64,000 nt of DNA from Octopus sinensis (GCF_006345805.1 NW_021832869.1:1-64000); one strand, 5' to 3'; numbered from the stretch's first letter, positions 2,535 through 60,353 are shown. The notes: generated by a model not told the origin, from the sequence alone. Numbers and translations: made by a program.

Positions 2535-2596
2535 AATCAATCAATCAAACAAGTTTATTGTAATTAACAGGGAAAGAGAAAGTGACAGGAATTAAG
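2535..2596 (-). mobile_element. ~60-bp extreme 3' tail of Jockey/I-like LINE (family A) with (TTGA)n end
   Basis: gtttattgtaattaacag.gaaagagaaagtgacaggaatt matches 10484-10523; followed at once by viral L sequence. Confidence 0.75.
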
Positions 2597-4409
2597 TTGT
2601 ACTCATTTGTCGAAGATCTGACTCATTTGTCGAAGATGTGGGACGAAGGCGACACTGATATCTTTAATAAGAATGAGTGGGATCTTGAGAACTACGACAA
2701 CAAAATGACCATCAATTTATCAGAGTTCGATTACGATTTGGAGGGTATAGTAAAAGATGTGTTCGACACCACTGTTGGGTCAAAGGTTCTGAAGGAAAGG
2801 GATTATAATCTCAACTCTCTGATTATTTTAGACCTTTTGACAGGAGATACGAAATCATCGATGTGTATAAATCAGGGTACACGGAGAACGCATTATAACA
2901 GTAGAGGGTTTAATGAGATAATACCATCAAGCTCGATAATCAAGAGTGATAACGTACATAAAGTGATATTTAACAAAATAATATTACATGGACACACAGA
3001 GAGAAGATATAGGGATTATAGCCATAAAGTCAAGAACATAATACAAAGGCCGTTCAATAAGAACCAGAAGTCTTTTGACTTAGTGAAAACATTCTATGAC
3101 AAGACTGTCCAGATGAGTGGAACCTGTGTATATGACGAATATATCAGGAGAGTCAGATCAAAACTGACCAATCTAACCAACAATATAGACTTTGTGATCT
3201 GGTATAAAGACTTGCTTCTTTGGAAATTAATTATTCTCTTGATGAATTCACAAGATAGAGAAGAAGTGACCAACATACTTTCCAATTGTGCATCATTAAA
3301 CTACTTGTTGAAGTAATCTCATACAAGTATAATGACTCAGGCACAATAACGTTAGATGTGAAGGATACAAGAACATACATCATAACCCCGAGTTGTGTTC
3401 TACTCCCATGCTGCCAACTTGTGTTAACCAGATCGCTAGTTCTGATGATAAAGGACATTCTTCAATCTAGAGTTAACACCCTCTTGACATGGGCAATCGA
3501 TAAGGGTCATCGACATGACAAAGGGTTATATCTTGACTTGATTAGGGTGTACAGATATTATGATTACCAGCTTGTAAGAAAAGGCACAGTTGCATATGAT
3601 TGCATCAAGTTGGTTGAGCCTATCTGTCTCTTAAGAGCTATTGTTTTAGCTGAGGTTGGCGACAGATGTAGAAAAGCGACAGATTTTGGTAAATATATTA
3701 AGACGACAATTGAGGAGCTATACAGGACCCTCGACATTGACATGGGTATCTTTAGGGACATGATTGTCAAGAATCAAAATATTTATGATGTTTTGTTCTT
3801 TTATGGAATATGCAGACATTGGGGGCATCCGAAGATAGAGTGGAGGACAGGACTTGACGATCTAAGGAAAAGAACAACAGAAGATATAAAAGTAGACACT
3901 GATTATGTGAACACACTCGCAAGTGATTTTGCAATGAATCTCTTGAGACATTATTATAAGAAGAACAAAAAGTGGCCAGTTGAGATTACAAAGACCTTCC
4001 GGAAGATCATCCTTTCATAGACGAAATAAGAGAAGCGAGCCGTACCCTGTTCAAATAGACAAGTTTGGTCCCAATTGGCACAAGCTCCCCTTTAAGAAGT
4101 TATACGATATCCCAGAGACAATAAAATTATCAGACATATTGGATCATAAGGCGCACTCTTTGACTAGATCTGAATTGAGGAAGTATATTAGACGAGGGTC
4201 AGTAGGGACGAGCGCCAATAGAAGAGTTTTAATCAGCTCGCTGTACACTGAAGAGTTCAAGTGTGGTGAATTCTTAAGAAAAATACAAGAACAGGGGTTG
4301 TCAACAGAAGACTTAATAATAGGGCTTTCGGCAAAAGAACGAGAATTGAAAAGATCTGGAAGATTCTTTGCGTTGATGAGTTACAACATGAGGTTATACT
4401 TTGTAATTG
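2597..4409 (+). pseudogene. Endogenous rhabdovirus-like L polymerase, N-terminal ~600 aa (EVE-1), frameshifted
   Basis: ORFs 2582-3316, 3286-4020 and 3980-4540 carry ERDYNLNS, RHWGHP, FGPNWHKLP, DKAHS-like DHKAHS and KERELKRSGRFFALMSYNMRLYFV, all typical of rhabdovirus L. Confidence 0.93.
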
Positions 4410-4647
4410 ACTTTAGATATGTCCGAGACAACAAAGTTTGGATAAAAGTACATAATTATCAGATCGAGGGCCGGATGGTCAAGCTCATATATAACCGATG
4501 GTCAAACTCATATATAACCTATCGAATTGTGGAGAGTTGACTCGAGTGTTCAACTCAGAATGCTTCTCTAAATTTGTTCAGTCAAAAGTTGCGTTCGCGA
4601 GCAACACAAATCCGATTTTCGACCATGATATTGTAATCTCATTTTGC

Positions 4648-7600
4648 AAGTTGAACGAACGAACAGATTTTATTGACTTAGCAACCGAAAGAGAAGAGTT
4701 ATATGAAAAGGTTTTATTAAAATCGAGACACCGAAAGCCTCCTCCTTGCTTTCCTTTTCACTTCTCATGCCCTTTGCAATGAGCAGAGGACTTGCCGAAT
4801 GTTTTGAGTTTGTTCGTCTAGCTCTCTGGGGAGATCCTGATCAAGCCGTAGCTTATACGCCAGTTTAATCGCAAAGCGCCTTGTTTTCTCCAGTTTGGTG
4901 ATTATGCGATTTCTCTCGTCTGTAGGGTACCAACCTTCATGTCCATAGATAAGTACTGGTTCTACAATCGCCTTATTGTCTCCAGAAGTGGTTCTCTTCC
5001 TTTCCGAGTTTTAGAAATCCACGTGATGGTGGACTTGTCTCGTGCTATAGAGAGGGCTTTCTCCATTGCCCAAGACTCAACCCTCGCTACATATTCCCTC
5101 AGTCTTTTCCAAGAGAGGTCCTTAGATCGCGACAGATCCGTAACCAATATGTCGTCCGCATAGATAATTAGTAGACTCTCCTGATTTACTGGTTTCGGGA
5201 TGTCGGCAACGTATAAGTTGAAAAGTAGAGGGCTCAGGACCGACCCTTGAGGCACTCCCCTCCTTAGATTGATTGTATCCGAGGTCCGGTTACCACATCT
5301 GATAAAAGACTTTCGCATGTGTAAGAAATTCTCTAGCCATTTGACAGTCCTTTGCCCCGGATGGATACTGATGATCCTTTCCAGGAGGCCTAGGTGCCAA
5401 ACGCTGTCGAACGCCTTTGAGATGTCCAGACAAACAGCTGTCATCCCCATCTTGTGTGTAAGGGCCCTCGAGATTTGCGTTTCCAGGTGGGCAAAGCAGT
5501 TTCCACAGGACTTCCCACGTCGGAAACCCCATTGTTCTTTAGCCAGGTAACCTGACTCCTCCACAAGAATAGATAATCTGTTAAAGATTATACGTTCCAT
5601 GATTCTTGATATGGAGCAGATGAGACTTATGGGTCGGAAATTTTCTGCACGGTCTTTAGATTTCCCTGCCTTTGGAATCATTCGTACCACGGTTTTCTTC
5701 CATGCATTCGGGACGTATCCAGTCTCCCAACTGGCATTGAAAAGTATCGTTATTATCTTTACTAGGCTTATCGGGGCCTCTTTGAAAACTCGGATGGGTA
5801 TGTAATCAAAACCCGGTGCGTTGTCCTTGCATCTTTTAATTGCTAGTAGGGTTTCATCGAGGGTGATTGCGTGACAAAGTCGACCAGGGGACATTTTCGC
5901 AGAGGCTATTGCCCTCTTTTTATCGTCCATTATATCTGTCGGGACAAAACAGCTCGGGTCGACATCTTGAATTTTCGCCAGTTGTTGACGTAAAGCGTCA
6001 GGTACATCGTCTCGGTTGATGGCATAGCCATTTTCTGTGGTTAAATTGATTTCATCTCCTTTGCATTCCGTTTCCTTTAGGCGATTATATGCCTTCCAGA
6101 AACTTGGGTGTCTTCGATTAAGCTTAGAACATTCCAATCTCCAAGCTGAGTCAATGTTTTCTTTAGACCTTTTGTCGATCCTCTTTTTAAGAGAGGAAAT
6201 CATTGCTCGTAGGCGTGTGCAGTCTGTTGGGTCAAAACATCTGCGTAGCCTCTTCTGGTATCTTGCCTTTTCTTTCAGGAGACTCACTACTGTGTCGTCG
6301 AGTTCATGAGTCCCTCCACCAGAGTGTTTAATGAACTTTTTCCTGGAAAACTTCTCCAAAGAAGTGTTGATGAGATTCCTAACGAGCTGGTCCAGACTTT
6401 CAATTTGTTTTGTCGTGTGAACTGCTGCCCGATGTATGAGTGACTCTAGCGAGGTTGTCAGGAATAGGGACACAAGGGGCCAATTCGTTTGATTGGTATT
6501 GTATCCAATAAATACTTCATCTTGCAGAACTGAGCTTGCACGTAACACCATTGTTTGAGGAAGGTGATCGCTTCCGATATCAATTTCAATGCGTGGGCGG
6601 TCACAGAGGGGGGCTAAGCAGTCCGCCACGAGAAACACACCAAGTCGATCTTCTCCGTAACATGAAAAGTGATTCGTTTCGTCAGAGGACCAGACCTCAA
6701 AACCGTGTCTCGCCGATAAGGTATGAAGTAACCGTCCGTCACTGTTTGTTGATACGCATCCATATAGCGAGTTCTTTGCGTTTAGGTCTCCGACTAGAAT
6801 CGACTTTCCATTTGCCTTGAAGAAACCTCCAACTAGGTCTGGGTAACTCTTGAGGTCCTTTGAGTACATCCCCCCAATAGTGATCCATCCCAGAGAAGTA
6901 TGGAGCTCGAGAGACAGCATTTCGCATCGACTTTCTTCTATTCTCCTGTGATTTCTTGTTTGAAGGTTTTCTTTATAGTAGATGCACGATCCGGTTCCCG
7001 CATTCGCGAACGGTTTCCAAGCAATACTCAATGACTTGTATCCTTTGATGCTGAAGGATTGGCCTTCCTTCAGTTTCGATTCATTGATAACAAGTATATC
7101 CATGTCTACGGAGCCAATCATGTGGAGTAGCTCCGTAGCCCGTCTCCGAAGAGATCGGGCGTTGATGAGCGTTATAACGCTCATATCTTTCCGTCTGGAT
7201 ACTGGCGGCAGACCTCTCCCTTTAAGAGCGCCACCAGGAGGAGTAAACCCTCTCCCTTCTTTTTTGTCAGCGGCTTTTTGTCCGTAATCATTAATTTGAT
7301 GTCCGACTCCAGCTTCTCAGCGTATGACAGTCCCTCCATTTGCCACGGCATAATAGAAGGGTTCTGCTTCTCTGCTTCCCTTTTTGATGGGACTGTATCT
7401 CTTTTGGGTTTACCGCTTACAGTCTGTAGTGGTTTTCCTTCTTGTTTAGGAATATTGGTAGCCAGTGCGTCTGGTTTTGAAGGCTCGACGACCACACTCA
7501 GTGCTTCTGATTTCGGATGGGGTATTGATCCGACTCCAATAAATTGAGTTTCCTCGCGGAGGTTCCCAGTTTCTTCATCTGTTTGGGTTCCTACGTCGAA

Positions 7601-8290
7601 AGTGTCCTTCTTTTTGTCGACCGTCTTCCACTCTGACGGATGTGGTTTGCTTTTAGGACTGGGTTTTGTTGTCTCTTCTTTCATATGGCAACTGCTGCTG
7701 ATATTGTCTTTGGAATAGACAATTTTTTGTGTCCTAGGCCGGAAGATCTCTTCCTTTGGTGATTTTTGGACTCGTTTGGACATACTTAGTATGACCTTTA
7801 AGGCTTCCTTCACTTTAGGGCAACCTCGAAAGCTTGCCATATGCTCTGTCGATCCAAATTAATACAGATTTTGGAGATTTGCCCTTGATTTGAGCACGAA
7901 GCTCGATCATGATCTTCTCCACAGAGTAAGCACCTTCTTTTTTCTTTGCAGTTTCGGGACAAGTGCCCAAAATTCTGACAGGAATAGCACTGTGGTGCCG
8001 GTTTACGGAACCACTCACAAGATACGGGTGAAAAGCAATTGTGATGCCCATTCTGACCAGAGATGCTGCCTCACCTCGGTTCGGGATTACTACCTTCGCC
8101 ATTGGCAATGGGCGACCATTTTTTGAGAAACATTCTACTTTGAATCCGGGCGACAGTATAGACTGAAGATAGTCTTCGAGTTCTGGAGTGCCAACCCAAT
8201 ACGGTAGGTTCCTTAGGACGACCTCTGATGGGCTGAGGGATGCTTCCTTCCTGAATTTTCATCTTAATGAGTTATCAGATACCAATATTC
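4648..8290 (-). mobile_element. Jockey/I-like LINE (family C), 5'-truncated; Gag-like ORF1 with CCHC knuckles plus APE-RT ORF2
   Basis: ORF1 remnant QCYSCQNFGHLSRNC..CLLCGEDH; ORF2 4962-7184; C-terminal KAIVEPVLIYG after a deletion near 4980; AATAAA plus (TTCG)n tail near 4650. Confidence 0.9.
4962..7184 (-). CDS. LINE ORF2: AP endonuclease plus reverse transcriptase (C-terminus deleted/frameshifted)
   Basis: APE motifs INARS, NESK, GDLNAK, GSDHLP; RT motifs RPISL, QWGFR, LDISKAFDSV, GVPQGSVLSP, YADD. Confidence 0.92.
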   Translation of the reverse strand: MSVITLINARSLRRRATELLHMIGSVDMDILVINESKLKEGQSFSIKGYKSLSIAWKPFANAGTGSCIYYKENLQTRNHRRIEESRCEMLSLELHTSLGWITIGGMYSKDLKSYPDLVGGFFKANGKSILVGDLNAKNSLYGCVSTNSDGRLLHTLSARHGFEVWSSDETNHFSCYGEDRLGVFLVADCLAPLCDRPRIEIDIGSDHLPQTMVLRASSVLQDEVFIGYNTNQTNWPLVSLFLTTSLESLIHRAAVHTTKQIESLDQLVRNLINTSLEKFSRKKFIKHSGGGTHELDDTVVSLLKEKARYQKRLRRCFDPTDCTRLRAMISSLKKRIDKRSKENIDSAWRLECSKLNRRHPSFWKAYNRLKETECKGDEINLTTENGYAINRDDVPDALRQQLAKIQDVDPSCFVPTDIMDDKKRAIASAKMSPGRLCHAITLDETLLAIKRCKDNAPGFDYIPIRVFKEAPISLVKIITILFNASWETGYVPNAWKKTVVRMIPKAGKSKDRAENFRPISLICSISRIMERIIFNRLSILVEESGYLAKEQWGFRRGKSCGNCFAHLETQISRALTHKMGMTAVCLDISKAFDSVWHLGLLERIISIHPGQRTVKWLENFLHMRKSFIRCGNRTSDTINLRRGVPQGSVLSPLLFNLYVADIPKPVNQESLLIIYADDILVTDLSRSKDLSWKRLREYVARVESWAMEKALSIARDKSTITWISKTRKGREPLLETIRRL

Positions 8291-9832: not shown

Positions 9833-10330
9833 TTCAGTTAAAAAAGTCTAGAAAAAATATAACAATAATGATTAAAATTGGTAGAAATTGACATTTTTAG
9901 ATTTAGGGCGCTAAAATATAAGATCGCCAATCCGGGAACAAATAAATAAAATTTGCCATAAGAATATAAAGAATAGAACTTTCTATCAAAAATAAGGTGA
10001 ATTCAATGAATAAAGATAATGAGATAATTTAATAGCGATATAAACAGATTGAAAGAATAAACTCGCAATATTACGAATGATGAATTTCAGATATTTATTA
10101 ATAAAAGAAACTACATCGCAAATATTCCTTCTAATCCAATTAAATAAAAATATAAAGATTGACCAAATATGTAACAGGACACAAGGTATGTCAAAAGAGT
10201 GGTCACATGTTCCAATTTATTAGGTTTTCTATTAATAATTGGGTAACAAAAATTAAGATAATTTTAATTAAAACACATTCTACCTAGTACTTATAAACAG
10301 TGTAAATACCAGAGGGGATATCTCAATGAT
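9833..10330 (+). repeat. ~500-bp AT-rich segment duplicated at ~20765-21295
   Basis: Collinear match (gttcagtt..aaagtctagaa ... gatatctcaatgatgg); the second copy has many homopolymer insertions. Confidence 0.85.
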
Positions 10331-11680: not shown

Positions 11681-13876
11681 TTTCTGTCTTAATCCCTCTA
11701 ATCCACCGGGTCGCCCGTTCCATGACACCATTAGGTCATTGTACTTATTTTTTATTCTGCCTGATTCATCAACCATAAAAGCAAGAGGTGCGTTTGCATA
11801 GTAAAAGCCAGATTTCTCAAATATTCTGTGTGTTCTTGAAAAGACATTTTTTAATCCGCATGCACGATCCATCACTTAAAGATTGGCGAAGTGGAGTCAT
11901 GTCTTTGAAGATTGTTCCATTTAGAGTAGTCAACATGTGCAGCATATGTAACAGTGGTCCTTTGATCCGTTGAGTGTCCTGGACTGCCTCTCTCATTTTC
12001 TTGTACACTGTAATTGATGGGTCGTTTTCATAGTAATAGAATCAAACATCGGTAAGAAGTATTTCCAATTAGTTTCTCTGTAGCACAAAATAGAGTCGAA
12101 GAGGAAAGTCATTAATGAAAAGAACCTTCCTTCCTTTTGAGCTCACGCTCTTTTGCTCTCACTCCAATCACATAGTCTTTTTCTTCGAATCCGTTCTCAT
12201 CAATATCTTTTAAGAATTGTTTAAAGTTCACATTTTCTTTACTTAACGCAGTGTTCAGGACCCTTCTATCTGCACTGTATCCAATGGTTCCTTTCCGCAA
12301 TGATTCTTTGAGCTCTTCCATGTTTAGTGAATGTGATTTATCACTTAATAGTTCTGATAATGGCATGGTTTCAGGTATCTCAAATATTGGCAGCATGGGT
12401 AATTTATGCCAATTGTGCCCAAATGCACGTATGGACAGTTTGCTTGGGAAGAGATCGGATTTTATCTGATACATAAATGTTTTAGAATACGGCTCAAGTT
12501 CATCCAATTTTTCTTTGTCGACTGACCATCGCTTCTTGTCTTGAAAGTCTATTACAAGAATCATTCGAGCAAGGTCACTCGCCAGTTTCTCTATATATTC
12601 TGAGTCAATAGGTAGATCTTCATGGGTTTGATCGTAAAGTTTCTTTAGCCCTTCTTGCCATTTTATTCGCGGGTGACCCCAATGCCTATATGTTCCAAAG
12701 TATCCAATAACTTCATGCTTGTTATTATTGTTCATTATCAGATCATACAAGTATTTAGCAGTATTTGGTCGGAGATGCTCTGCATCATCGACTGTTTTCT
12801 TGATGAAATCATGAAAATCAGATAATGACGGGACATCAGACCCTTCTTCTGACAATAAAACTGATTTGTACATTGCTATGACTTCTATTAACTTAATAGA
12901 TTCATATAGTTCAGTTCCGTCTCTCACCATCATCTGGTCAAAGTGTATGTACATTCTAACCAAATCATGTGTGAAATGTTTTGTGAATCTTCTCCCATTA
13001 TCTAACTGTAATGACAACAAGCCGTTCCAGCGGCTCTGGAAAATATCCTTAACCATTAGGACCAAGTTAAAATCCAATAATAATTGTGTTGTATCAACTA
13101 TTATGTATTCTTTTTCAATCCACACTTTATGACTCACACTCACATCAGGGCTCTGAATTATAAAAAAGAGTTTTCCTTCATCATATCCGTACCTTAACCC
13201 AATAACATGTAGCCACCGCGAATTCTTTAGAATTTTGTTAGTTTCTTCATTTAATGTAGAATTCATTAAATTCACAATAAGCGAAAAAAGTTTCGAACAC
13301 AAAAAATATTGCATCACGCTCTTGTTTTCCAACATCGTAGTAACATTTTGTCGGATTGCATACTTTCGGTCTCTATGAAATCTTTGTTCCCTCCCAGTAT
13401 CCTTTCTTCAAAACAAGACGCAATCCTGTTGTATGGTTTGTCTTCAGACATAATTCTTCTGAAGTGTTTCAGCGTTGCCCTCCTCGTTGCAATGGAAGGC
13501 AGAAGAAAACATTTGTTTTCTGTTATTATCATATCAAACAACGCTTTATGGATTACCTCCCCAGATGGAAAATTAGAAGGGTTGTATAGAGGCTATCATA
13601 GTGTTTCTCCATAAAATTGTTCCGTATCCTCAAATGATCTTTGGTAACCAGTCTTGTTTTGTCGTCAACTAGCTGATCAATAGAATCGGTTATGATTGGT
13701 TGATTCAAATTATAATCCCTTTCATGGAGTATATCAGCCAACAGGTAAGTAGGTATGTCATCGTTCTCATTTCCTGATTGGTTTAATTGTAATTCCTCGT
13801 ATAGGTTCCCAAACTCATGTATGTTAGAAAAGTTACACTCAGTTAAAAACCGGTCTTCTATATAGTTGAAATTCAT
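11681..13876 (-). pseudogene. EVE-2 L polymerase, N-terminus to RdRp motif B (~730 codons), frameshifted
   Basis: ERDYNLNQP, RHWGHP, FGHNWHKLP, DKSHS, KERELKR, HVDYSKWNN (motif A, ~11910-11935), WNGRPGGLEGLRQK (motif B) where it breaks off. Confidence 0.95.
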
Positions 13877-13938: not shown

Positions 13939-15550
13939 TTATAACGGAATATTTGTATATGGTTTTTGACGGACAAAGTGATGGTAGTTAAACCTTTCTT
14001 CATGAGCATCAGGAAGATTATCACCATTGTTTTCCTCCTCACCTTCTATGTTTTCTTCCGTAAAGTATTGTCTGTGCCTTCTTAAGGGGTGATAACGCCC
14101 TATCCTTCTCACAATGTTGCGGTGATGGTGCCCCATCAAACAATGATACAGAAATGTTAAAGAGACTGTAACTACAATTCCAAGGAACAAATAGGTGAGT
14201 ATGAAGATCACCTTGTGTCTCAATGATACCACCCAGTTGATGTTATTGAGTCTAGGTGATTTATCTCTCTCGTCTATAATCACTTTCTGCTCTTCAGTTG
14301 ATGATAACTTTTGAACATCATTTATAACTTCTTCAATATCTCTTTCATTGTTTGTTAAATTCACAACTAGATCATATGTCTCAACTGTATCATCAAGGTT
14401 TGGAATCACAATTTGATAAGCATCGTTTATGTATAATCCGTTTATACTTGAAGTAGATGGTGCACAGCGGCCACTCATGTTCGTTATGGACCCATCTGTG
14501 TCTATACACCAATTGCCTAAACAGCATTTTTTTTACATCAGTGCTGTTAGGGTCAATGGTTACCCATGTATACTGTGCTGCTCGTAAATACAGACCCTCA
14601 TCAGTCAATTTGTAAATGTATGACACGGATGGAGACGATGGTATTAGAGAAAGTAGGTTTGAATGCCGTATCTCCATTGATTCCTTGATTTGTGACCTGA
14701 CAGTCTCACATAGTGTATTTTTGACCATGTTTCGAATTTGGTGTACTTCGACGTCAATGTACCATTTCCTTGAAACGCCTTTCGGTTTTTGTTTGCAAAG
14801 CTTAGTACAAGACACAGATGTGCCATGTAACATAAGCCCTTCCAGCGTATTTATGTACTTCTTCCCACAATGGGTTTCACAACACCGTTTGTTGACTTGC
14901 AGATAATTACCAAATTCAGTTATGTACACGGTTGAGTTGAGCTTGTGCAATTTTATCTTTTGATCAGGTGCACACTGATCTCTCGAGGTTTCTATGTAAA
15001 TTCCTTTATTCGAATTGAATTTACATGTCTTGTTTAAGCATATGTTGTCCTGAAAGAAAGAATTCTTTAGTGTATTTGACAATTGGTCAATCATGTAATT
15101 CACCGGATGTACAAGGTATTTTACCACTTTTTCTTCTGTTACTTTGGGCCAGATACAATTACAGCTTGGATAGGCAAAAACTGATGAAAAGCCACTGTAT
15201 GAGCCTTGCATGTATCTATCAATCTCTGCATGACATTCTTCATCAGGTGTCATTTCATTTTTCCAGTGTTGCTTTACTATTTTCTCCCATAGCCAAAAAG
15301 GGTAGTCACATCTGCAGTGTAATTCGTATTTATTGCATGTAAATCCTCTTGAATAAAGTTTCGTCACATGAGTTTCCACATAGCTGACTTCATCCATTGC
15401 ACTGATCGGGCTTGTGTTTGGATACACTCTTGGGCATATAATGTTGTCAGGATTTATTTTATTCTATTTTGAGCTCAAGACATGGGTAGGTAGAAGTATC
15501 TCATATTCCGACTTAGTGTGTAACAAAAGCAGAACCACCTGAATGATCAT
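13939..15550 (-). pseudogene. EVE-2 glycoprotein G (class III fusion protein), frameshifted
   Basis: ATG at 15550 gives signal-like MIIQVVLLLL; Cys pattern GFTC..CRCDYPFW..EECHAEI..YPSC..ICLNKTC matches rhabdovirus G; TM segment VIFILTYLFLGIVVTVSLTFLY and cytoplasmic tail in ORF 13939-14478. Confidence 0.92.
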
Positions 15551-20530: not shown

Positions 20531-21539
20531 AAAAACACATCGCAAAAAAAGTACATAGAGGAACAAGCTCTCGATAAGTTATGCTGCCTGTCCTGTTATT
20601 TGTCATTTTATAATATTTATCTTGACAAAATAGATTTTGAAATAGAATTCAAATATTTTTTTTGAATTTTTTTCCAAGTCCGAAAGTATAACCACCTAGG
20701 CTCGGTACACCCTAGGCCTGTGACATAATAATTTATAAAAATAATATAACAATAATTAAATTCGTGTTCAGTTTAAAAAAAAGTCTAGAAATAAAAAAAA
20801 TATAACAATAATGATTAAAATTTGGTAGAAATTGATCATTTTAGATTTTAAAACGCTAAAATACAAGATCGCCAAATCCGGGAACAAATAAATAAAAGTT
20901 TGCCATAAGAATATAAAGAATAGAACTTTCTATCAAAAAAAGGTGAAATTCAATGAATAAAGATAAATGAGAAAATTTCAAATAAGCGATATAAACAGAT
21001 TGAAGGAATAAACTCGCAAATATTACAAAATGATGAAATTTCAGATAATTTATTAATTAAAAGAAACTACATCGCAAAATATTCCTTCTAATACAATTAA
21101 ATAAAAAAATAAAGATTGACCAAATAATGTAACAGGACAACAAGGTATGTCAAAAGAGTGCTCACACGTGCCACAATTTATTAGGTTTTCTATTAATAAC
21201 TGGGTAACTAAAAATTAAGATAATTTTAATTAAAACACAATTCTACCTAGTAGCTTATAAGCAGTGTAAATACCAGAGCGGATATCTCAATGATGGTCCA
21301 GATATCTGAAATAAAGACTGCGATAATAATAATTATTTCTGTTTCATAGAGAATCGACAATTAATTTGCAAGGAGATTGTATTTCTGAAATTTCCACGTG
21401 CCAAATTTTTTTTAACAAAAAATCTATGCAAATCAATTTATGATAGGCGTTTCTAGGAAGGCGATTCTAGGAAATAAAGAATAAATTTTTTTAATTTGAA
21501 TATGCAAAACAATCATCATTTTTTGAATGTGGCGCCACA

Positions 21540-43426: not shown

Positions 43427-44629
43427 TATGTCTTAGGTTGGAATATTTGGAGTTCTACAAGGACGTGGTCAGGATGGTCCCCGATATGTACAATCTGGTG
43501 GTGGTCAGGCATTTGTTTGTTTATGTCGGCAATACTTTGACTGACTGTGAGTCATTTCTGGCAAACAATGTTACATTTGAGGACGCGGACATTTCTGAAG
43601 ATAGGAAGGTTATTGCTCTCAAAATCAATTATCAAACAAACATTTCTACTCCAATTACAATGTAAATCCGTTGGACGAAGAAATAAGAAGTAATATGTCG
43701 CGTCCCATGGTGGTTACGCATCCCATGCTGGCTACATGTCACCTGTCAATAAATCATTTTTACGAGGTCATTGGCTGTCAGATGTCATAATTAATGTGGT
43801 TTAATCATTCGTTACTCGTGTGGGCATATTTAATATTTTTAGCGTTAAAGCCATTCTGGAATTTGTAAACTGCAACAGGAATGTTTACACTCCTATTTTA
43901 CAATAAAGCACTCCATTCATTCTTCTATAAATGAAACACCATTTAAAAAACTAAGAGGAGTTTCTGGTATAAACACCGTCATTCATGATGATAAAAGTTT
44001 TTTTAATTTTTTTAATTTCAAAGAAAGTGAGTGTTTGGATGATTTTTATCATGTATCATCAGAGGATATGGATGTAGAAAATATTTTAGATGTTTCAGGT
44101 AAATTTTGAATAACATATGCTAGACAACTTGGATGCTAGTGATTTTATATTTAATTTTTCTCCACCTAATTTAAATTCACCATATTTTAAACGCATGAAT
44201 AAAAAAATGAATGTTCATCAATCAAAATACGATTTTTCAATTGGGAGCGGAGTATTTTTAGTGAATAATTGTTAGGTTAGAGTTCTAAAGGATTTTGGGA
44301 CAAATCCTTCCCTAAGGCTAAACCGATTTGAATCCCCATATGGCGAACCTGCTGAAGTTGTTCAAATTTTGTCAAACAATCGACTAGAGGTCTATTTTAT
44401 TATTATTTTATTTAACAGATTAAAACAAGTTCAGGGAAGTCTAAAATAGTTAATATGAATCAAGTTAAAAAAACGTAGACGCTTTATTTTAATAAATTTT
44501 TATTGTTGAAACGATTATTGATTAGAAATCAATGCAATTAAATTAATTATTAAATTTGACAGTCACCATGACAGGCATTATTATTTATTGACGACATGTA
44601 ACCACCATGGGATGGGTAGCTCGTGTGTG

Positions 44630-44960
44630 ACGCGACATAATAGATGGGGCTTATTCGGTCACATCCTACGAATGGACAGGAAAACTCCCGCAAATCTCGC
44701 AATGGAACACCACTACGCTCCTCATCCGGAAACGACCTTCCGAGGAAGACCACAAATCAATCTAGCAACCCTCCTGCATCAAAACCTAACTTTGATTAGA
44801 AAAGAGTTGAAATCGACAGACGATCATGAGCACTTGAGGAAACTATCGAGGAACAAAGGGACTTGGAAGCGATTAACAAAACACATCCAGGAGAGGGTGG
44901 CACACACGAGATAACTTTACTAACGTTATTTTGCGGTGTGCTTATTAATAATAATAAGGA
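44630..44960 (+). mobile_element. RTE-clade LINE 3' fragment
   Basis: RWGLFGHILRM..RGRPQ..LL..W pattern of RTE C-termini. Confidence 0.65.
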
Positions 44961-45084: not shown

Positions 45085-46335
45085 CTGTTGAAACTGGGAT
45101 AAGGGGAAGTTTGTGTTTGAAACTGGGATAAGGAGGGGGAATACAGGTTGGAATATAGTCTAACAGTGCAGGAGACATGGAAGGAAACCCAGTGAATGGA
45201 AGAAGAACAGCGTTGGTGGTCGAGTGGGAGACAGTCAACAACGAGTTGATCGTCTGAGGACTCGACGACTTGGACCATCAAATTTGTGTACTTCAAGCCA
45301 ACGCAGGAGGAATGAGTGAGCCGTTTGAAGTTAGTGGCCTCAAATTGGTAGTCTGAGCGTTCGATGAAGATGACGGAGGAGAACGCAATGGAGTGTGAGC
45401 CGGCTTGAGGATTGGAAGGGAAGTCGGGGACAGTGAAGGAAGAGGGGTAAGTAAAGTTGCAAATATGGAGTTTGAGTGGATTGAGAACAACCATAGTCCT
45501 AAAGAGTGAAATGTGGAGAAGGAACCTTTTGGCAATGGAATTGAGTACAGTACGACTACAGGCATCGAGGAGTGAGGGATCAGTGTGTGAGAGGGACATG
45601 GTGACTCCGACGTTGGCACAAAAGTAGTTGAGAGCGTCGGGTGGGACTCCCCTTCTTCGGAGAGAGAGTAAACAGTCTGGGGTCATCCCAATCACTAGAG
45701 TAGAAAAGTCGAGTAAACCTGACGAATCCTCGTTGGATGAGCTTGGCAATCTTCCTCTTGGACACAACACTGTAGTACAAGTTGAGTCGACTGTACTCCC
45801 ACTGGACTGAACAGTACACGTCAAGGGCATTGCACAAATAAAAGTAAGACGACCGCCTACACTCCCCGTCATCAATCACCTGCTCTGGAACTCCTTGGTG
45901 CACAAAGAGTGAGTGATGTCCTCGATGGAGTCACACAAGCAGTGAGTAAAGTCATATGTGGGATATACACACCTACACTCCTCCCATTGGCACTACCAGT
46001 CATTCATTGTTCGGTAGTGCTCGCAGTACTTTATTCGGTAGGCCACCGGGTCCACCTTCCCGTCCTCCATTCTGTGCTTCATTCTCAACGACGCCTCCCT
46101 CTCCTCCAACTTCTCTCTCCTCATGTCCTCGAACAGCCCCAATGACTTTTTCACCGGTCTTGTCCTCCATGGAGACTCCCCCACATTCGTCCCCTTCAAC
46201 TCATCCGCGACATGTGGCACACGTACGCCAAGTCCTTTCTGATCAGCTTTACTGCCAGAGAGTAGAGTTGCTCAAAGTAGTCCGACGCGTATGTGATTGC
46301 GTGAGGGGCGTATCCCAGCCACCGAATGTCCTGAT
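45085..46335 (-). pseudogene. QARS: Glutaminyl-tRNA synthetase internal fragment with five micro-introns, truncated at both ends
   Basis: [73 protein letters not shown]; introns at 45973-45996, 45857-45879, 45695-45718, 45499-45525 and 45123-45144. Confidence 0.9.
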
Positions 46336-47704
46336 ATTCCGTAAACTTGTTAATTCCTTGAAAAGGCACATTTGGATCTTTCAGAGATATTTTGAATTGC
46401 CACAGATTGATGTCCTTCTATGGTTGGATGGAAAACTGAAATTTAACATCTTATAGCTGGATGGCAAGCAGACGATGAGTTGATTCCTGTGATTTGGCAT
46501 CACAGCATATTGCATCAAGATAATATTCCTGCAAAATCGTACATACCGCGCTATTTAAGTCAAGCAAACTATTGAATTTAAGTCGAATTCCAAAATGGAA
46601 ATATTATAACTTGGTTGATAATGCTTAAAATGCATCAGTCTTTGGATCAACGCATTCATGTGAAGTTCTTTTCAGTAAATTTACGCAAACAAAAATAAAA
46701 ATCGAGTGATTGATGAACACTTAAATCAACTTCGCCGTCACCGTCTTTGCAATTTTTGTAAGGTATGTTTTGGACATATTCTATTTAAAGTTTTGATTAA
46801 ATACACAAACCAATCTTCTTACAGTCGATTAGTGCATTTTTGTTGCATTTTTATATGGTCCTTCGACAAGTATACATTATTGGATGGGGCCTATTGGTAA
46901 ATATGCACATTTTATGGCTATTCTCAATACTACACAATGAGTAATTTAAAATACCGAATTTTTAGGGGATGACTGTTTTTGGGTGACTGAAAAATGACAT
47001 TTAATGGCATGTATCTTTAATGAAAATAAGATTTGTACAGAGATTTTAAACTGTCTAGGCATGCAAAGGCATCTACATTCAAGTAACGAAAATTACTACA
47101 GAAATACAGTGCTCTAATGATTCGAAATATTTAAATATGCATATGGAAATTAACGATCCAACTCATCCAATGAGCTGTTTAGTATTCTCTTTAGCGAGTT
47201 TCCATAACAGTAACTAGCATTAATGAAATTTTGATTACAATCGCTTTAAGTTTGTTAAATTTGAGAATATTTTTTTATCTGGAAATGTAACGTTTCTTAA
47301 AATTGCATTGATGTTATATGTCCCACAGCATTTTCTCTATTGAAATTACAATTATTGAACATCCTAATTTAAATTAAGCAATTTTTTAAAAATCTGTTGT
47401 GTTAAGTTACAGTCGTTTTAAATCACAAAGTAAACAAAAAGTAGGACAAGTGAAAACATTATAATTAAAAGTCAGATTTTATTGTGAATAACTTATTTTT
47501 TGGACATTTAATTGATATATTTTTTTCGAGTGTATTTGTTAATATATATTACTTTAAACTTATTTTCCGTCAAGATCCGCACCCAGTCAGAAAGTGTATT
47601 GGCTCTGGGTAGACTGAATTTGTTGGAAACTTTCTAAATATTTTCAATGTTAAGATTTCCTATAATTGGGTTTTTAAAAGACATAAATTTACAGCCAAAT
47701 GTCG

Positions 47705-48809
47705 GGTACTTGTAGATTTCATGCTGCACGAAATAAGGCTCTAACTTAATTTTGGAAAATTTTTTTGATTAAAAATATGAAAAATTAAAAAAAATGAACA
47801 ATGCCGAATTTGTAAATATTATTATAAATTTTTTTAAATAAAATTTTGAATTCTTAACGTCTTAATGGTGTTAAGACTATACCGACAAAGTAAAAAAGTT
47901 ATTAAAGTCAAAAAAGTTCAGTTGTTTCGACGTAGTGCGACGTTCGGTGGGCGATATCCAACGATTATTGCGCCATTTTGCGCTCCCCCACATTCTCTCC
48001 ACAGTCTGAGTATGTGCACCGGTCCTCGGGTCTACAAAATTCCGCCTGTGATTGACTGTAAGGTGCACATATGCAAGAGCATTAAGATCTGGCGTTGAAT
48101 AACCTATTAACAAGAACAAAGTAATTACAATTACCCTTCCATTTGTCAGAGTATATCACTGAACCCGGTGCGATATTTCGCTGTATCGCGGCTGTCAAAG
48201 TTCTTTTCGTGCGATCTGGAACCATCTCCAGGAAACACTCATTACTTCCTCGACAGATTCCCCCAAACACCCATTGTTGAGGGAGAATCCGTCCTGCATT
48301 ATTCTTTCTTTTTGAAAACATGCATTCGTCTACTTCAACACTTTTTCCAATTCCACCTATACAATCAAATATGAGTAATATACCAATCATGTGTTCGGAC
48401 GATTAACTAAATAATCAGCACATACCTCCCGCAGGAGTGAGACCAATTACAAATAGTTTGGCTACTCCACTCCAATTGACGCTGACACCATGAAATTGTG
48501 TGTCTGTCAAGCTCCACATATAGATAAAACGAATACATGATGTAAGGGCACTGTCGTGCTTCGAGCTACGTACCTAAAATAAAGTTCCTCTTATTATACC
48601 GTTTCTGACAGAACTATAAGTTCGGCACTCGCTTTTATTGCACACCCATGTGGTATTATCTTGCTGAAAAATTTTTTTAAAAAAATTTATAATAATATTT
48701 ATAAATTCGGCATTGTTCATTTCTTTTAAAATATCATATTTTTAATCAAAAAAATTTTTCAAAATTAAGTTAGAGCCTTATTTCGTGCAGCATGAAATCT
48801 ACAAGTACC
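47705..48809 (-). mobile_element. Merlin (IS1016/IS1595-like) DNA transposon with intron-containing transposase
   Basis: ~140-bp TIRs starting GGTACTTGTAGATTTCATGC; 8-bp TSD AAATGTCG; IGGIGKSVEVDEC, WVFGG, SDKWKGY, VNH..FVDP.TGAHTQTVERMW; introns at 48357-48383 and 48104-48134. Confidence 0.92.
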
Positions 48810-49319: not shown

Positions 49320-49698
49320 TCCGCCCACAGATGATGGCGGAAACGGAAACCGCGCTTTCCGTTCTTCCGTGACCAGGATGCCGAACGTGGCAGAATATGG
49401 AGGGTGGGCGAAGCCTTTGATTGCGTGTCGTTGTTTTGTGTTTGTCCTTGATCTTTCTCTCGATTTATTTTGCCAGTTCCAAGATTTAAAGTGTCAGTTG
49501 AAGGATTACAAAGAGGGACTGAGTCGCCTTCCTTCTTTTTTGGTGTGCAATAAAGTCGATTTACAAGACGCAAGTCGGAGATTTGATGAATTTGTTTGTT
49601 TGGAGGACACTATAATCGCCCCTGTGGCTGTCTCTGCTAAATTCGTTGTTGGTATTGCAGACTTTCTGACTAAATTACGCTCTAAACTCTTTGCTTAA
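49320..49698 (+). pseudogene. Obg-family GTPase, internally deleted
   Basis: DDGGNGN..F Gly-rich Obg fold joined directly to FVFVLDLS..NKVDL..VSAK; G1-G3 motifs missing. Confidence 0.7.
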
Positions 49699-49924: not shown

Positions 49925-50700
49925 TGGGCAAAAAAGATGAAATAAATATAATTTTTATTGGTCATGTCAACGCAGGAAAATTGACAATTGGCGGTAACCT
50001 AATGCTCTTACAGTAATGATAAGCAAGATAACATTGGAGAAATACGAGGCAAAAGCGCGGGAACCAAACCTTGAGTCGTGGTACTCCTAACTCTAATTTC
50101 TGAGGTACCTGTGCTCTCGACACAAACCCAGAAGAGCGCGAAAAAGCAAGACTGCGAAGTGCGGTATTCCTACTTCGAAACCCCCAAAAAGAACGTGACT
50201 ATATTGGACGCTCCAGGCCACAAGGCATATGGCCCCAACATGATAAAGGGGGTAGTCAAGGAAGACATGGCAGTACTAGTAATCTCTGCGAAGTCGGGGG
50301 AGTTTGAGACAGGGTTTGACAAGGGGGTCAGACGCGGGAACATGCTATCATTGCGGAGGCTTCTGGCATTAATTATTTTGTTGTCTTTGTTAATAAAATG
50401 GACGACCCGTCTGTCACGTGCCCCGAAGAAAGGTAATTTCACACATTTTTTTTGCCAAAGGTTTAAATTTTATGACGCGAAATTAGCGCCGTTTTTGAAA
50501 TGCGTCCTCTGGATGTGTATCCCTGGTTTAGGTGTGATTGCTAAAGTAATGCAAAGAAAGTGGACTTTTCTGTATCCGTAGGACAGTCTGGAGCCGATTG
50601 ATCAAAGGCCTTACCATCCAGTCAGGTTTTTGGTGGCAGATAAAGCAATAATAATCGGGACCTTGGTTTTTCGTAAACTGGATATTATTGATTAATAATA
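49925..50700 (+). pseudogene. Eukaryotic release factor 3 (eRF3/GSPT-like) GTPase-domain fragment, frameshifted
   Basis: IIFIGHVNAGKLTIGG, TLEKYE..WY..LDTNPEERE, TILDAPGHK, VLVISAKSGEFETGFDKG, NKMDDPSV; 24- and 28-nt introns. Confidence 0.85.
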
Positions 50701-55256: not shown

Positions 55257-58180
55257 TAACAGATTGCATTATTTATAAGTAGTCACTTTTTTCTGCTTTA
55301 AGTGTATTTTTACTCTATTGGAGACACCATGAAGATTTTAATCGAATAATAACAATTAAGTAACATTCCATATGTGAAGACCATTTATTACACTGAATGA
55401 TTCTTTTTAACCTATGATAATTTACATTTAATTTATCAATTTATTTTAGCAAAATTTTTATGAGAAAGATAAGTCCTCTCAATCAAAATTGCTCATAACG
55501 TTTTCAGTTTATGATACTTATTGTGACAAAATGAATTATTGAACGTATAAAATATATTTGATGTTTTGATAACACTTTGTTGGTGAAAACGTCACAAGAA
55601 AGAGTATCCGAATTGTCCTAACTGATCTTACTGGTAAAAGTGTCGACTATAAACTTTATTTGTACAAATGTCCGTACATAATTGTTTAAGAAATTAAATA
55701 TTGGTGTAATCTCATGAATAATTCTTCCATAACTATTAATAAATTATTTTGATAATTCGATTTGTAATTTATTTTATCTTTATAATTTTTATTATTGATT
55801 TAAATTTGTCAACTTTAAACTACATTTTGTAGATTAATTCAAAATGATCAAAAAATTGAACTCCAAAAACCATGAAAATAAACATCCAAAACACAAAATC
55901 ATGCTTATCTAGCTACTGTTAGCTATCTAGCTACTAACAGCCTTTTTAAAATAAAATAAAAAAATAAAATCTAGCTACTGTGATTTTAGGTCCGCGTAGA
56001 ATCTAAAAAATCCGCCTTCAAACCAGATGAGTAAGAATATTTTAATCAATTTAGTCATCCGGATCACAAAAGCATCAAATGTTGAAAACAAACACTTTAA
56101 AAGTTCGAGTTTTCTAATTATCAATTTCTCTTTAACCCATTTATTGTTTTGGTTTTAATATATATAATAGTTTTATTTATTACTAATGTGTGGTCAGATA
56201 AATAATCATAGCATCTAAATTATCAGTTCTTACCCTTTTTAGCTTAAGGGTCAAATCGACAAGAAAGAGTATATTTCCGGGCCGCACAAAAAAGATTTCA
56301 TTTATTAAAAAAAGGCTTTATTACGTAATAAGAGAATCAATGTGTGGTTTGGTTTTTTTTTGGTGTCTAATATTTTATCAAAGAGAAGAGTGAAGTTCGA
56401 ATACGATGTACGTTGAATTAGATGTTCACCACTCATCGATTTCAATACTTACTTTTTATTCGCGTAAGTTTACTGAAAAGAGGTTCACGTGAATACTTTG
56501 ACTGATGCATTTTTTGAGCATTATCGACCAAGTTCGAATATTTTCATCGTGAATTACAAAAATTTTTACTCCATTCAGATTAAAATTTTTTCAACTTTTT
56601 TAACACGTTTTCAAGACATCAAAAGCAATATTAATTGAAATTTAATACAAACAATATTTCATTTAAATCACCAAAAGCCCGTGGTTTGCTCTGTAGACAT
56701 TTACAAAGCCTTTGACTCGGAGGACGGGTATTATTAAGTGTATGAAATATCTAATTAGGGTAGGTCCTTTCAAGCCTGTGACAATGGTTATAAGGACGAG
56801 AAGAATGTACTGACTGTACTCTGCTTGTGTTACATTTGATGCCGACAAAAAGAACGACTCTTCTTTCCGAGGCAATAATCGGTGCTCCATTGAAGAAAAG
56901 TATCCATTCGTGTTTAAAGTTTACAAGTTATGAGAGATATGACTACGAGGACGTGATAGAGGATGACAGTGATGACGATTCTAGTCCGACGAGAATAGAG
57001 GAATTAATCTGTATTCTGATTTGTGTCATCATTTAGCTCAATTGGAGACAATTCCAGAGGAGAATGGATCTCGAGACTTGGAATATGAACAAGTCCCAAA
57101 TGAGGGGGAAATGTCTAACACGTTCGACGATATGCAGTTGGGTGTGGAAGGAGACAGCGAGGACGAGCATTCTCATCTCATTGAAGACATCTCAGAAAGT
57201 ATTTCCGACTGGACTTGGTCTTCTTCAATCGGAATTGGTCTTTGAATGTTTTAATGTTACAGATGTGGGGGTCCAAAATTTCGACGGACTTGTCCTTGAC
57301 AATTTAATTTGGGCAGTTGAATCTGATCAAGTTTTTGGAGGGCGAGAGATTATGTCAGATGAAGAGTATCACACATTTATGATATTGTAGCCAACATATA
57401 TTATTCGTACATGTACAGTCTTGTCGTGGTGGATGCTGCACAGTCTATGTCGTTGGCAGGGATGTCGGCCTCCAAGTGCTCACTCTCAAGATAATTTCAT
57501 TCGACGACTCGAAGGAATCTCTGAGTGGGAGTATTGGGCAAATTTGGTCACGAGTTCTCAATGTGTTTGAATCCCTTTGAATTCGTTTTGGTATTGAAAT
57601 GTGGGACAGTGGGCAACGTACAAAGCGCTCAACTGAAGACAGGGGCGATAACTCGGAGGGAGTCACTCTGAAAGATCAGTGCCCTCTGATGTACTCCCAG
57701 ATAGTCTGACTCGTCTGTTACAATTGATGAGGTCTCAGTCGAACAAGCAATATGGACAGATGCTCACCTCACTCAATTTAGGGTCACATCTCCATTACGC
57801 TTTCTTTTTTAATTCCATTGCCTATTTCTACCAAGTACTCCAAAACACAGTTAATTGCTCGGAAAACTCCCTCTATGACAGGGTTATTGCTTTTTTGTAT
57901 TTTAGTTTTTTAAAGGGAAGTGTCAGTCTAATTCAGAATACAAAGTTACTTATATTCTTGCGCTGAATATAACAGACACGTTCAAGTCTGATCCTTGAAC
58001 AGCAACTGGAAGCAATTATTAAAGAACAAAAGATGACTGAGGAGAGTAAAAAAAGGAAAATGACTGACATAAGGTGGGTCGAGGGCCTCTCTCTCACAAC
58101 CAAAGGCCATTTTGTCCCTTTGCCCATTCTTATAAACAGACTGCAGTACTTTCAACTCCTTTTTTCCCATCTCCTTAATC

Positions 58181-60353
58181 CAGACGTCACCAAACTACGG
58201 CCCGCGGGCCGGATCCGGCCCGCGACAACATTTTATCAGGCCCGCGCACTATTTCGAGATATTCAATTAATACCTTAATAATTAACTTAAATAAAAACTT
58301 TAATTAAAAAATTAAACTATTTTGCAAGATTTAATTCGAAAAAAAACTTATCAGCATTAACGTTAAATTTTTCTTTGTTGCTATGTCTAATATGAAAAGA
58401 AAGGTTGACCGCGAATGCCGTGTATTCAATAAATTATGGGAATTGAAGTATTTTTTTGCGAAAGATGAATTAAAGCAGAAAGCTTATTGTTTAATATGCC
58501 ACGAACATCTCTCTGTTATGAAGGAGTATAACATTCGACGTCATTATGAAACGAATCATGTTCCGATATATTCCAAGTACACTGGAAAGCTACGTGAGGA
58601 TAAAGTTGAATCACTGAAACGCACTTTACAAATTCAACAAGGCCTTATAAAAAAAAATTTTGAAAATAATGAAAATGTAACAAGAGCTGGATACGAGATA
58701 ACGAAAATTATTTCACAACACGGGAAACCCTTTAGTGATGGGATGTATATCAAAAATTGCATTATTGAAGCAGTTAATTGTTTGTGCCCACTAAATTCTT
58801 CCTTATTTGATGGAATAAGTTTGTCGGCGAGTTCTGTATCACGGAGAACTGAAGAGCTTGGAACAAATATATATTTACAAATTTGTGAAAAGACAAGTAA
58901 TATGTTGTGGTATTCTCTTGCATTGGATGAGTCAGTTGACATTTCGGGAACATCGCAACTTCTTATTTTTATTCGTGGAGTTGATGAGAATATTTCCATA
59001 ACTGAAGAACTGGCATCTGTTTGTTCTATTCATGGAACAACCACTGGAAAAGATATTTTTGATGAATTGGAACAAACTATAAGTGACTATAACCTTGAAT
59101 GAGAGAAACTGAGTTGTGTTACGATTGACGGGGCAAAGAATATGGCTGGTTTTAAAAAGGGTCTAGTTGGGCAAATAACTAATAAATTGGAGGAATTACA
59201 TATTTCAAACACTTTGTTCATTCATTGCATCCTTCATCAGCACGCACTATGTGCGAAGGCTCTTAATATTTCATGTGTGTTGAATCCAGTTATTCGCATA
59301 ATAAACTTTGTTCGAGGGAGCTCACTTAATCACCGTCAGTTTAAAGTTTTACTTGACGATTTTGGATCTGAATATTTTGACTTACCATATTACACTGCAG
59401 TTAGATGGCTTAGCTGTGATAATGTATTAAATAGATTTTATAAACTCCGAAGTGAGATTGATATTTTTCTAACCAGTAAAAATAACTATTATCCCGAATT
59501 ATCAGATCTTGCTTGGCTATCAAAATTATCATTTTTGGTTGATGTTACAACTCACATGAATGAGCTAAATCTGAAATTACAAGGAAAGGAAAACTTAATT
59601 TGTGATTTCTACAGGATAATTAAAGCATTTCGACAAAAATTGATGTTATTCGAGTCACAACTTGGAGTACGTCAGTTTTCACACTTTTCTTGTTTTAAAA
59701 GTTTTTGTGAGGCAAACTGTAATGAGATCGACATTACTTTCCAAATTGGAATTATCAAAGAATTAAAACATCATTTTTTACATAAGTTTTCTGAACTTGA
59801 CAAAATTGAAAGCGATATAATTTTGTTCGAAAATCCATTTTCTTGTAATGTTGAAAATGTTCAACATGAATTACAATTAGAAGTTATTGACTTACAATCA
59901 AATGAACAGCTCAAAGATTGTCACAGACGGACCAAACTCGCTGAGTTCTACGAATATCTCAAGGATGATGAGTTTCCGAGACTAAAGAATTTTGCGATAA
60001 AGATGATTTCTATATTTGGCACAACTTACCAATGTGAGCAAACGTTTTCGAGGATGAAATATGTTAAGTCTGCCCATCGTGCAAGATTGACTGACGGACA
60101 CTTAAAATCAATTCTCATGATAGGATGCAGCAATTTAAAACCAAATATTGATGAACTTATCAAAAAAAGATCACAGTTCCATAGCTCTCATTAAAATTTT
60201 TGTTTACTTTATTTTTGTTTAAATTAGTTTTTATTGTAAAAAACACACTTATGAATTTCTAGTAAAATTATAATCCTATGCACGTGCTCCGGCCCGCGTT
60301 CATTGTGTTGGGGTCAATCCGGCCCGCGAGTGCAAAAAGTTTGGTGACCCCTG
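58181..60353 (+). mobile_element. Complete hAT (Charlie/GTF2IRD2-like) transposon
   Basis: TIRs CAGACGTCACCAAACT / AGTTTGGTGACCCCTG; perfect 8-bp TSD CCTTAATC; transposase 58383-60194. Confidence 0.95.
58383..60194 (+). pseudogene. hAT transposase with a single in-frame TGA at 59100-59102
   Basis: BED-like CLICH..RRHY, SLALDESVD, DGAKNM (read through the stop), HCILH, VRWLS, FGTTYQCEQTFS; both ORFs are in the same frame. Confidence 0.9.

Follow-up and report, generated by a model that had tools for sequence, protein, structure and literature searches.

How a piece of a GlnRS gene came to lie in DNA recorded as Octopus sinensis, and why the excess of G over C on its strands reverses in mid-gene, in introns as well as in exons, are the questions raised by this locus. 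The piece occupies the minus strand from 46339 to 45105 of the window (the whole stretch of 64,000 nt that was analysed) and corresponds to residues ~321–708 of the ~782-residue animal GlnRS. Its stop-free pieces match PF00749 (tRNA-synt_1c) and PF03950 (anticodon-binding) in Pfam with E-values of 4e-8, 1.8e-7 and 2.3e-15, and the two domains stand in the order of GlnRS, the catalytic domain first and the anticodon-binding domain after it. An earlier note had claimed a GlnRS fragment copied from elsewhere and truncated at both ends; the first claim is supported by the minus-strand homology and the Pfam matches, and the second by the limited span of residues and by the absence of any further GlnRS piece elsewhere within the 64-kb window. 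Both cuts fall in mid-exon. Weak GlnRS homology perhaps extends upstream to ~46363, with Octopus GlnRS residues 363–415 aligning to 46363–46190. There is no complete frame, and the N-terminal domains and the HIGH region are lacking. Since only residues ~321–708 are represented and two frameshifts interrupt them (46209/46208 and 45661/45660), the piece is a gene fragment rather than a working member; it is probably a dead copy that does nothing now.

The fragment comprises parts of six exons and the five introns between them, all on the minus strand and all introns bounded by GT..AG. The first exon is split into E1a (46209–46339, EYQDIRWLGY...AYVCHM) and, after a 1-nt frameshift at 46209/46208, E1b (45997–46208, ADELKG...RTMND), which carries a PF00749 match and belongs to the G/purine-rich part of the gene. 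Intron 1 (45973–45996; 24 nt, phase 2) and intron 2 (45857–45879; 23 nt, phase 2) are both G-rich and enclose exon 2 (45880–45972; 93 nt), whose silent sites are of pyrimidine type. Exon 3 (45719–45856; 138 nt) encodes a KMSKS-type motif, VVSKRK, and contains the cumulative G−C maximum at 45746–45747. It is followed by intron 3 (45695–45718; 24 nt, pyrimidine-rich) and by exon 4 (45526–45694), in which E4a (45694–45661) and E4b (45660–45526) are separated by the second frameshift, located in a CT run of 7 nt as against 12 nt in orthologues. Intron 4 (45499–45525; 27 nt) is pyrimidine-rich, in frame and stop-free; exon 5 (45145–45498; 354 nt) encodes the anticodon-binding domain, PF03950; and intron 5 (45123–45144; 22 nt), again pyrimidine-rich, leads to about six codons of the next, sixth exon, at the end of which the homology breaks off (45088–45122).

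Neither poly(A) nor a terminal repeat nor a target-site duplication was found at the outer ends of the fragment, and with five introns kept, no poly(A) and no flanking duplication the fragment is unlike a processed pseudogene. No inverted-repeat or hairpin symmetry was found between its two halves. A tandem duplication with a period of 29 nt lies exactly at the 3′ breakpoint (45088–45133, with a 17-nt repeat at 45088–45104 and 45117–45133) and repeats the last part of intron 5 together with the beginning of the following exon. Its appearance is that of a break repaired with templated fill-in.

To place the introns, the exons of the Branchiostoma floridae (amphioxus) and Haliotis (abalone) GlnRS genes were mapped and the introns of the fragment set on the protein alignment. 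All five (24, 23, 24, 27 and 22 nt) fall at intron positions of both genes, intron 1 at Branchiostoma residue 438/439 and Haliotis 439/440, and intron 5 at the Branchiostoma boundary 701/702. Exon 2 (93 nt) and exon 3 (138 nt) are identical in length to the amphioxus and abalone exons, and removal of the introns, the stop-free intron 4 included, brings the protein alignment back to collinearity with the orthologues. Judged by sequence, these are real and ancient introns that have shrunk to 22–27 nt. The two introns quoted in the earlier note proved exact to the letter, being intron 1 (45996–45973) and intron 5 (45144–45123). When GT..AG gaps linking ORFs were scanned for blindly, the result was too noisy to be of use.

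Introns below 30 nt are known among animals only in dicyemids and in myxobolid myxozoans (PMC13644364). Dicyema introns measure 26.2 ± 1.9 nt and lie at conserved positions in genes for divergent proteins (PMC2222250, PMC6543705); of the splice signals they keep only about GTa...AG, and the pyrimidine tract is absent or very short (PMC13644364). The introns of the fragment are of this type both in length (~20–30 nt, with GT..AG) and in their conserved ancestral positions. The likeness to the ultra-short dicyemid introns (PMC2222250, PMC6543705, PMC6736024, PMC13644364) extends from size (22–27 nt), GT..AG ends and ancestral bilaterian positions to weak splice-site consensus, little or no pyrimidine tract, a fast-evolving protein and a link to Octopus sinensis data, and is drawn from published descriptions rather than from dicyemid sequence. 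Myxobolid introns are also alike, with a median of 22–27 nt and reduced splice signals, but myxobolids alternate between fish and annelids or bryozoans (PMC13644364), whereas the sole database link of the window is to octopus data; a myxobolid lineage may nevertheless be compatible with the single-gene GlnRS tree described below. Introns 1 and 2 are without any pyrimidine tract, and splicing without one, which the earlier note took to be implied, would indeed be implied for the parent gene; such splicing is already published for dicyemids and myxobolids (PMC13644364) and is not new. In the parent gene an ordinary spliceosome would remove such introns guided by very few signals (GT, one or two A's, AG), as has been described for dicyemids.

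Introns 1 and 2 (45973–45996 and 45857–45879) contain G runs and end alike at 3′, in the 9-nt sequence GGAGTGTAG; the common end points to a signal used by both or to an origin from one source. Small vertebrate introns reportedly depend on G triplets, a dependence said to have been described by McCullough and Berget in 1997. Those introns resemble introns 1 and 2 in being short and GC-rich with G runs in place of a pyrimidine tract, but they are several times longer. G-run-rich introns with a common 9-nt 3′ end, as are two of the five here, form a class absent from the published dicyemid and myxobolid descriptions (PMC2222250, PMC6543705, PMC6736024, PMC13644364).

Base composition changes sharply along the fragment. 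The earlier note had described the plus strand as G-rich over ~45085–45800 and C-rich over ~45850–46300, and measurement agrees: GC skew is +0.347 over 45085–45800 (AT skew +0.157) and −0.271 over 45850–46300 (AT skew −0.126), and cumulative GC skew, the check that it had proposed, displays the switch, with its maximum on the plus strand at 45746. In 700-nt and 450-nt windows alike, GC skew over the left half exceeds that anywhere else in the 64 kb, the telomere excepted (mean over the 64 kb 0.01, sd 0.10). Flank skew is near zero, the GlnRS skew ending at the edges of the block. The block is also richer in GC than its flanks (0.498 versus 0.334 and 0.303), as the note had it, probably because it is coding sequence.

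The introns were said to follow the flip, and they do so closely. With GT and AG removed, the intron cores hold nine G and two C (intron 1), nine G and one C (intron 2), one G and six C (intron 3), no G and nine C (intron 4), and no G and ten C (intron 5), so that the two upstream introns pool to G18 C3 and the three downstream to G1 C25 (Fisher p = 5e-9). Four-fold sites on the coding strand number G23 A11 C3 T3 in E1a and E1b and C51 T24 A14 G3 in E4 and E5 (Fisher p = 8e-14), that is, a four-fold GC skew of +0.77 followed by one of −0.89, and, inside 1.2 kb of a single reading frame, a composition of 85% purine giving way to one of 82% pyrimidine. Within E1b, G occupies 42/70 third positions (60%) and the four-fold sites are G15 A6 C1 T1; third positions in exon 5 are C58 T33 A16 G10, and those of E4b and E5 together are 49% C and 7% G. 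The change is not, however, made at a single point, since exon 2, between two G-rich introns, is already of pyrimidine type (four-fold sites C3 T3 A2 G0).

Because the flip is present at four-fold sites, the composition of the protein is not its cause. In the GlnRS genes of Octopus, Branchiostoma and Haliotis the corresponding regions have all-site GC skews of only −0.07 to +0.12; amino-acid composition is thus ruled out by four-fold sites and orthologues together, and the flip, lacking in the three orthologues, is specific to the lineage of the fragment. Editing of the copy by ADAR- or APOBEC-type enzymes was likewise rejected, since A and G increase alike and the conserved residues are still in place. 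RNA structure near exon 2 was also rejected as a cause, folding there being unremarkable (z = −0.24).

The earlier note had proposed a parent locus at a switch in replication direction, that is, one straddling a replication origin or terminus so that a mutational strand bias reverses inside the gene. This would account for silent sites and introns changing alike and for orthologues without a flip, and it sits well with the lack of an evident selective reason, folding of the exon 2 region included. It is nevertheless improbable. Replication and transcription strand asymmetries pair G with T, whereas here AT and GC skew agree in sign, which makes the asymmetry one of purine against pyrimidine. 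Nuclear replication skews are not known to come near ±0.8, and the four-fold values of +0.77 and −0.89 stand far above them. Exon 2, of pyrimidine type between G-rich introns, breaks the pattern, flank skew is near zero, and pyrimidine-rich mini-introns occur within purine-rich exons as well. In place of joint enrichment of G and T with a single change of polarity reaching into neighbouring DNA, the fragment has a change confined to itself. GC skew in bacterial and mitochondrial genomes is a strand asymmetry associated with replication or transcription, and the GlnRS fragment resembles it in an abrupt change of sign that includes silent sites, but differs in that A rather than T accompanies G, in its much larger size, in its scale of ~0.5 kb, in being non-monotonic and in its confinement to the fragment.

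The neighbourhood offers a different description. Silent-site purine fractions are 0.24 in an Obg-like gene fragment, 0.25 in a reverse transcriptase ORF at 62797 and 0.33 in ORF 26463, and the candidate intron of an eRF3-like pseudogene (both gene remnants are described below) is pyrimidine-rich within purine-rich exons. Pyrimidine-ending codons and pyrimidine-rich mini-introns thus look like the local norm, which makes the purine-rich part the anomaly in GlnRS. We infer from this that the skew consists of two superposed components rather than one regional switch, on the evidence of seven introns and a small number of ORFs, of which several are transposon genes. The first would be a background typical of the genome, of pyrimidine-ending codons and pyrimidine-rich mini-introns, covering exons 2–5 and introns 3–5; the second would be a local module, a G/purine-rich stretch of ~480 nt made up of exon 1 together with introns 1 and 2, the G-run pair on either side of the 93-nt exon 2. 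The module may be due to selection acting on RNA, such as intron definition through G runs in introns that lack a pyrimidine tract, or to a mutation bias that is local. As the bias lies at silent sites, in a conserved protein free of in-frame stops, it would have been acquired in a working parent and not after copying; the skew would then be older than the copy, on the argument of conservation alone. The mid-gene flip is real and unexplained, and it and the pair of G-run introns are curiosities for which the evidence shows neither a replication switch nor foreign DNA as the source.

The parent of the fragment was not an octopus-type gene. In Octopus bimaculoides, residues 152–822 of GlnRS lie in one exon, so the fragment, with five introns in this region, was not copied from such a gene. 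In a maximum-likelihood tree the fragment falls inside animals, on the longest branch there, and outside the cephalopod clade, which has 100% support; in this single-gene tree its companions are other long-branch taxa, a grouping that lacks firm support. On these two grounds, gene structure and tree, a copy of the octopus gene was rejected. Identity to all animals is about equal, at 70–75% in the core and middle and 38–49% in the C-terminal part. Searched against 5.8 billion proteins, the middle piece (X-padded) matched animals at ~72–75% throughout, none of them closer, and the C-terminal piece reached at best 52% identity among 1.84 billion representative proteins; unpadded, the C-terminal piece gave no match in a protein search. 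No close relative was found in either the 5.8 or the 1.8 billion proteins, collections that hold no dicyemid GlnRS. A scan of JGI metagenomes for the fragment gave no match, and the parent GlnRS locus was found neither in the searched proteins, nor in the JGI metagenomes, nor in the window. The three best unnamed matches are intronless and unrelated to the source of the fragment. Exact look-up of eleven ORFs of the window found none on record.

Evidence on the resident genome comes from the rest of the window. The only good relative (48%) of a LINE in the window is a protein labelled Octopus sinensis, encoded at 202218–223618 of VCDQ01013128.1 (GCA_006345805.1; RefSeq LOC115229389, XP_029655612.1), an unplaced contig of 428 kb. 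This 21-kb region and the window have at least four repeat families in common (window copies at 46749–46866, 20972–21189, 10046–10263 and 56729–56778), and one of the repeats, just 400 nt from the GlnRS fragment, has an identity of 96.6% over 118 nt. As chromosomal controls, the regions around GlnRS in O. bimaculoides and O. sinensis were used. These two loci have 105 HSPs in common, and two families of short repeats (octopus SINEs) are present there in at least 13 copies within 31 kb, whereas the 85 kb of window and unplaced region contain none of these SINEs, and no repeat is common to the chromosomal loci and either the 64-kb window or the unplaced region. Tetranucleotide profiles gave 0.31–0.50 for the window to the unplaced region and 0.17 for the latter to the O. 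bimaculoides locus. Common repeats and matching tetranucleotide profiles indicate that the window and VCDQ01013128.1 are of one genome type, and not of octopus type. Octopus DNA with a dicyemid insert, a reading suggested by the LINE match and the 96.6% repeat, was dropped after this comparison with the chromosomal Octopus loci.

Genes near the fragment share its intron style. An ISXO2/IS1595-type DNA transposon (47705–48809, minus strand) lies 1.4 kb from it, with terminal inverted repeats of 143 nt (47705–47847 and 48668–48809, 95% identical) and a shortened transposase gene. An AT-rich, 31-nt GT..AG intron interrupts this gene at 48134–48104, and with this intron removed the Pfam match runs through the splice unbroken and rises from 28 to 53 bits; the gene probably has a second intron of ~70 nt. 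A decayed eRF3/EF-Tu-like GTPase pseudogene with several frameshifts (49930–50640, plus strand) has a candidate 24-nt GT..AG intron at 50081–50104, read by eye. Tiny introns are therefore present in two or three unrelated genes around GlnRS, the eRF3-like one as a candidate. Together with the non-octopus repeats they make the short-intron genome most likely the resident one. The earlier note had offered origin from another organism, and in that form the suggestion is not supported: neighbours have tiny introns too, the window lacks the repeats of chromosomal Octopus loci, and flanks belonging to a different organism than the insert were not found.

Dicyema japonicum lives in O. sinensis, and its genome has 36.7% GC and 49% repeats (PMC6736024); the GC content of the window is 38.5%. 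Intron size, the long branch and the link to octopus make it most likely that the whole window is dicyemid-type DNA. The repeat comparison suggests that VCDQ01013128.1 may be cobiont (dicyemid) DNA mislabelled as octopus. Neither the 64-kb window nor the 21-kb region of that contig contains an intact host gene, and the absence of an intact gene would be unexpected for a 67-Mb genome unless repeats were clustered.

On balance, the block is probably a non-functional, truncated duplicate of the GlnRS gene of the resident, most likely dicyemid, genome. A piece of the gene would have been copied as genomic DNA, introns included, and would have landed in a subtelomere rich in transposons, in an animal with normal introns of 22–31 nt, most likely a dicyemid, a parasite of the cephalopod kidney. 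Both the native origin and the dicyemid identity are to be read as the most plausible account of introns, tree and repeats. A (CCCTAA)n telomere tract occupies positions 1–970, which places the fragment ~45 kb from a chromosome end. Subtelomeres are patchworks of duplicated gene fragments and pseudogenes, and the locus is alike in having a truncated, frameshifted housekeeping piece ~45 kb from a telomere, with LINEs, DNA transposons, virus-derived sequences and the Obg-like and eRF3-like fragments around it; it differs in that the parent copy is not seen. In these respects the GlnRS fragment is an ordinary subtelomeric pseudogene. The C-terminal end of the Obg-like GTPase gene, with its stop codon, lies at 49444–49695 on the plus strand, so that there are two more housekeeping-gene fragments within 5 kb of the GlnRS piece.

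A rival to a native duplicate is capture by the host: a real octopus subtelomere that took up 1.25 kb of dicyemid DNA at a break, and acquired its short-intron transposon by horizontal transfer. Its attraction is that the best relative of the LINE and the 96.6%-identical repeat are in a record labelled Octopus sinensis, that the block exceeds its flanks in GC and breaks off within an exon on either side, with a 29-nt, templated-looking duplication at one junction, and that 64 kb pass without an intact host gene; dicyemids, moreover, release chromatin and circular DNA (PMC6543705). The record in question, however, is an unplaced 428-kb contig that has nothing in common with the SINE-dense chromosomal loci of O. 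sinensis and O. bimaculoides, 85 kb contain not one octopus SINE copy where 31 kb of the chromosomal loci have at least 13, and tiny introns are present in two or three genes that are unrelated to each other and lie less than 6 kb apart. We consider it unlikely. Were it true, it would be a direct transfer of a nuclear gene fragment, and of a parasite-derived transposon, from an animal parasite to its animal host.

An assembly artefact, in which a contaminant or chimeric read set foreign sequence between unrelated flanks, is very improbable. The telomere tract does have indel-like irregularities typical of noisy long reads, and two frameshifts interrupt an otherwise well-kept frame; given the noise of the tract, these frameshifts could themselves be assembly errors. 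The block is nevertheless internal, with unrelated sequence on either side, its truncation in mid-exon is not that of an intact contaminant gene, and its neighbours have the same intron style. Equally remote is a retrocopy by LINE 3′ transduction, in which a LINE tail was read through into antisense GlnRS and the transcript reverse-transcribed, introns being kept because antisense RNA is not spliced: the tail of a LINE ORF2 does stop ~170 nt before the fragment and in the opposite orientation, but poly(A), terminal repeat and target-site duplication are absent from the outer ends, and the gene is cut within its sixth exon, which makes such a LINE–GlnRS arrangement impossible in a working parent locus.

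As a gene, the dead GlnRS fragment is without importance. Worth keeping are the extreme flip at silent sites and the set of ultra-short introns, two made of G runs and three of pyrimidines; if the flip were genome-wide, it would bear on the recognition of 22–27-nt introns or on an unusual purine/pyrimidine mutation bias in dicyemid-type genomes. The possible mislabelling of VCDQ01013128.1 (LOC115229389) matters to users of the Octopus sinensis annotation.

Other elements of the window are of various kinds. The LINE tail mentioned above (ORF2 3′ end, RTE-like; 44600–44912, plus strand) has a GC content of 0.45–0.49, and no evidence was found of a link between it and the GlnRS fragment. The LINE with its 48% relative on VCDQ01013128.1, apparently intact, lies at 4962–7840 on the minus strand, with an ORF1 of 219 aa and an ORF2 of 740 aa (endonuclease and reverse transcriptase) overlapping by 4 nt. 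Scans with Rfam and for tRNAs found nothing in the window. A mononegavirus-like endogenous sequence on the minus strand was recognised by ORF matches (12112–13335 and 14393–15427, with neighbouring ORFs to 17734), its long ORFs matching Mononegavirales RNA polymerase and rhabdovirus glycoprotein; the plus-strand ORFs at 2564–4537 are possibly mononegavirus polymerase-like, by eye only. The telomere tract is regularly interrupted by an interspersed unit of ~17 nt (AAAACTAAGCCTTTTCC and variants), and its many single-base irregularities may be real variants or long-read errors. A hAT-type element (58335–60194, plus strand) combines a Spin-doc zinc finger with a hAT dimerisation domain, and its frame is broken by a single TGA (59100–59102), at a position where hAT relatives presumably have tryptophan.
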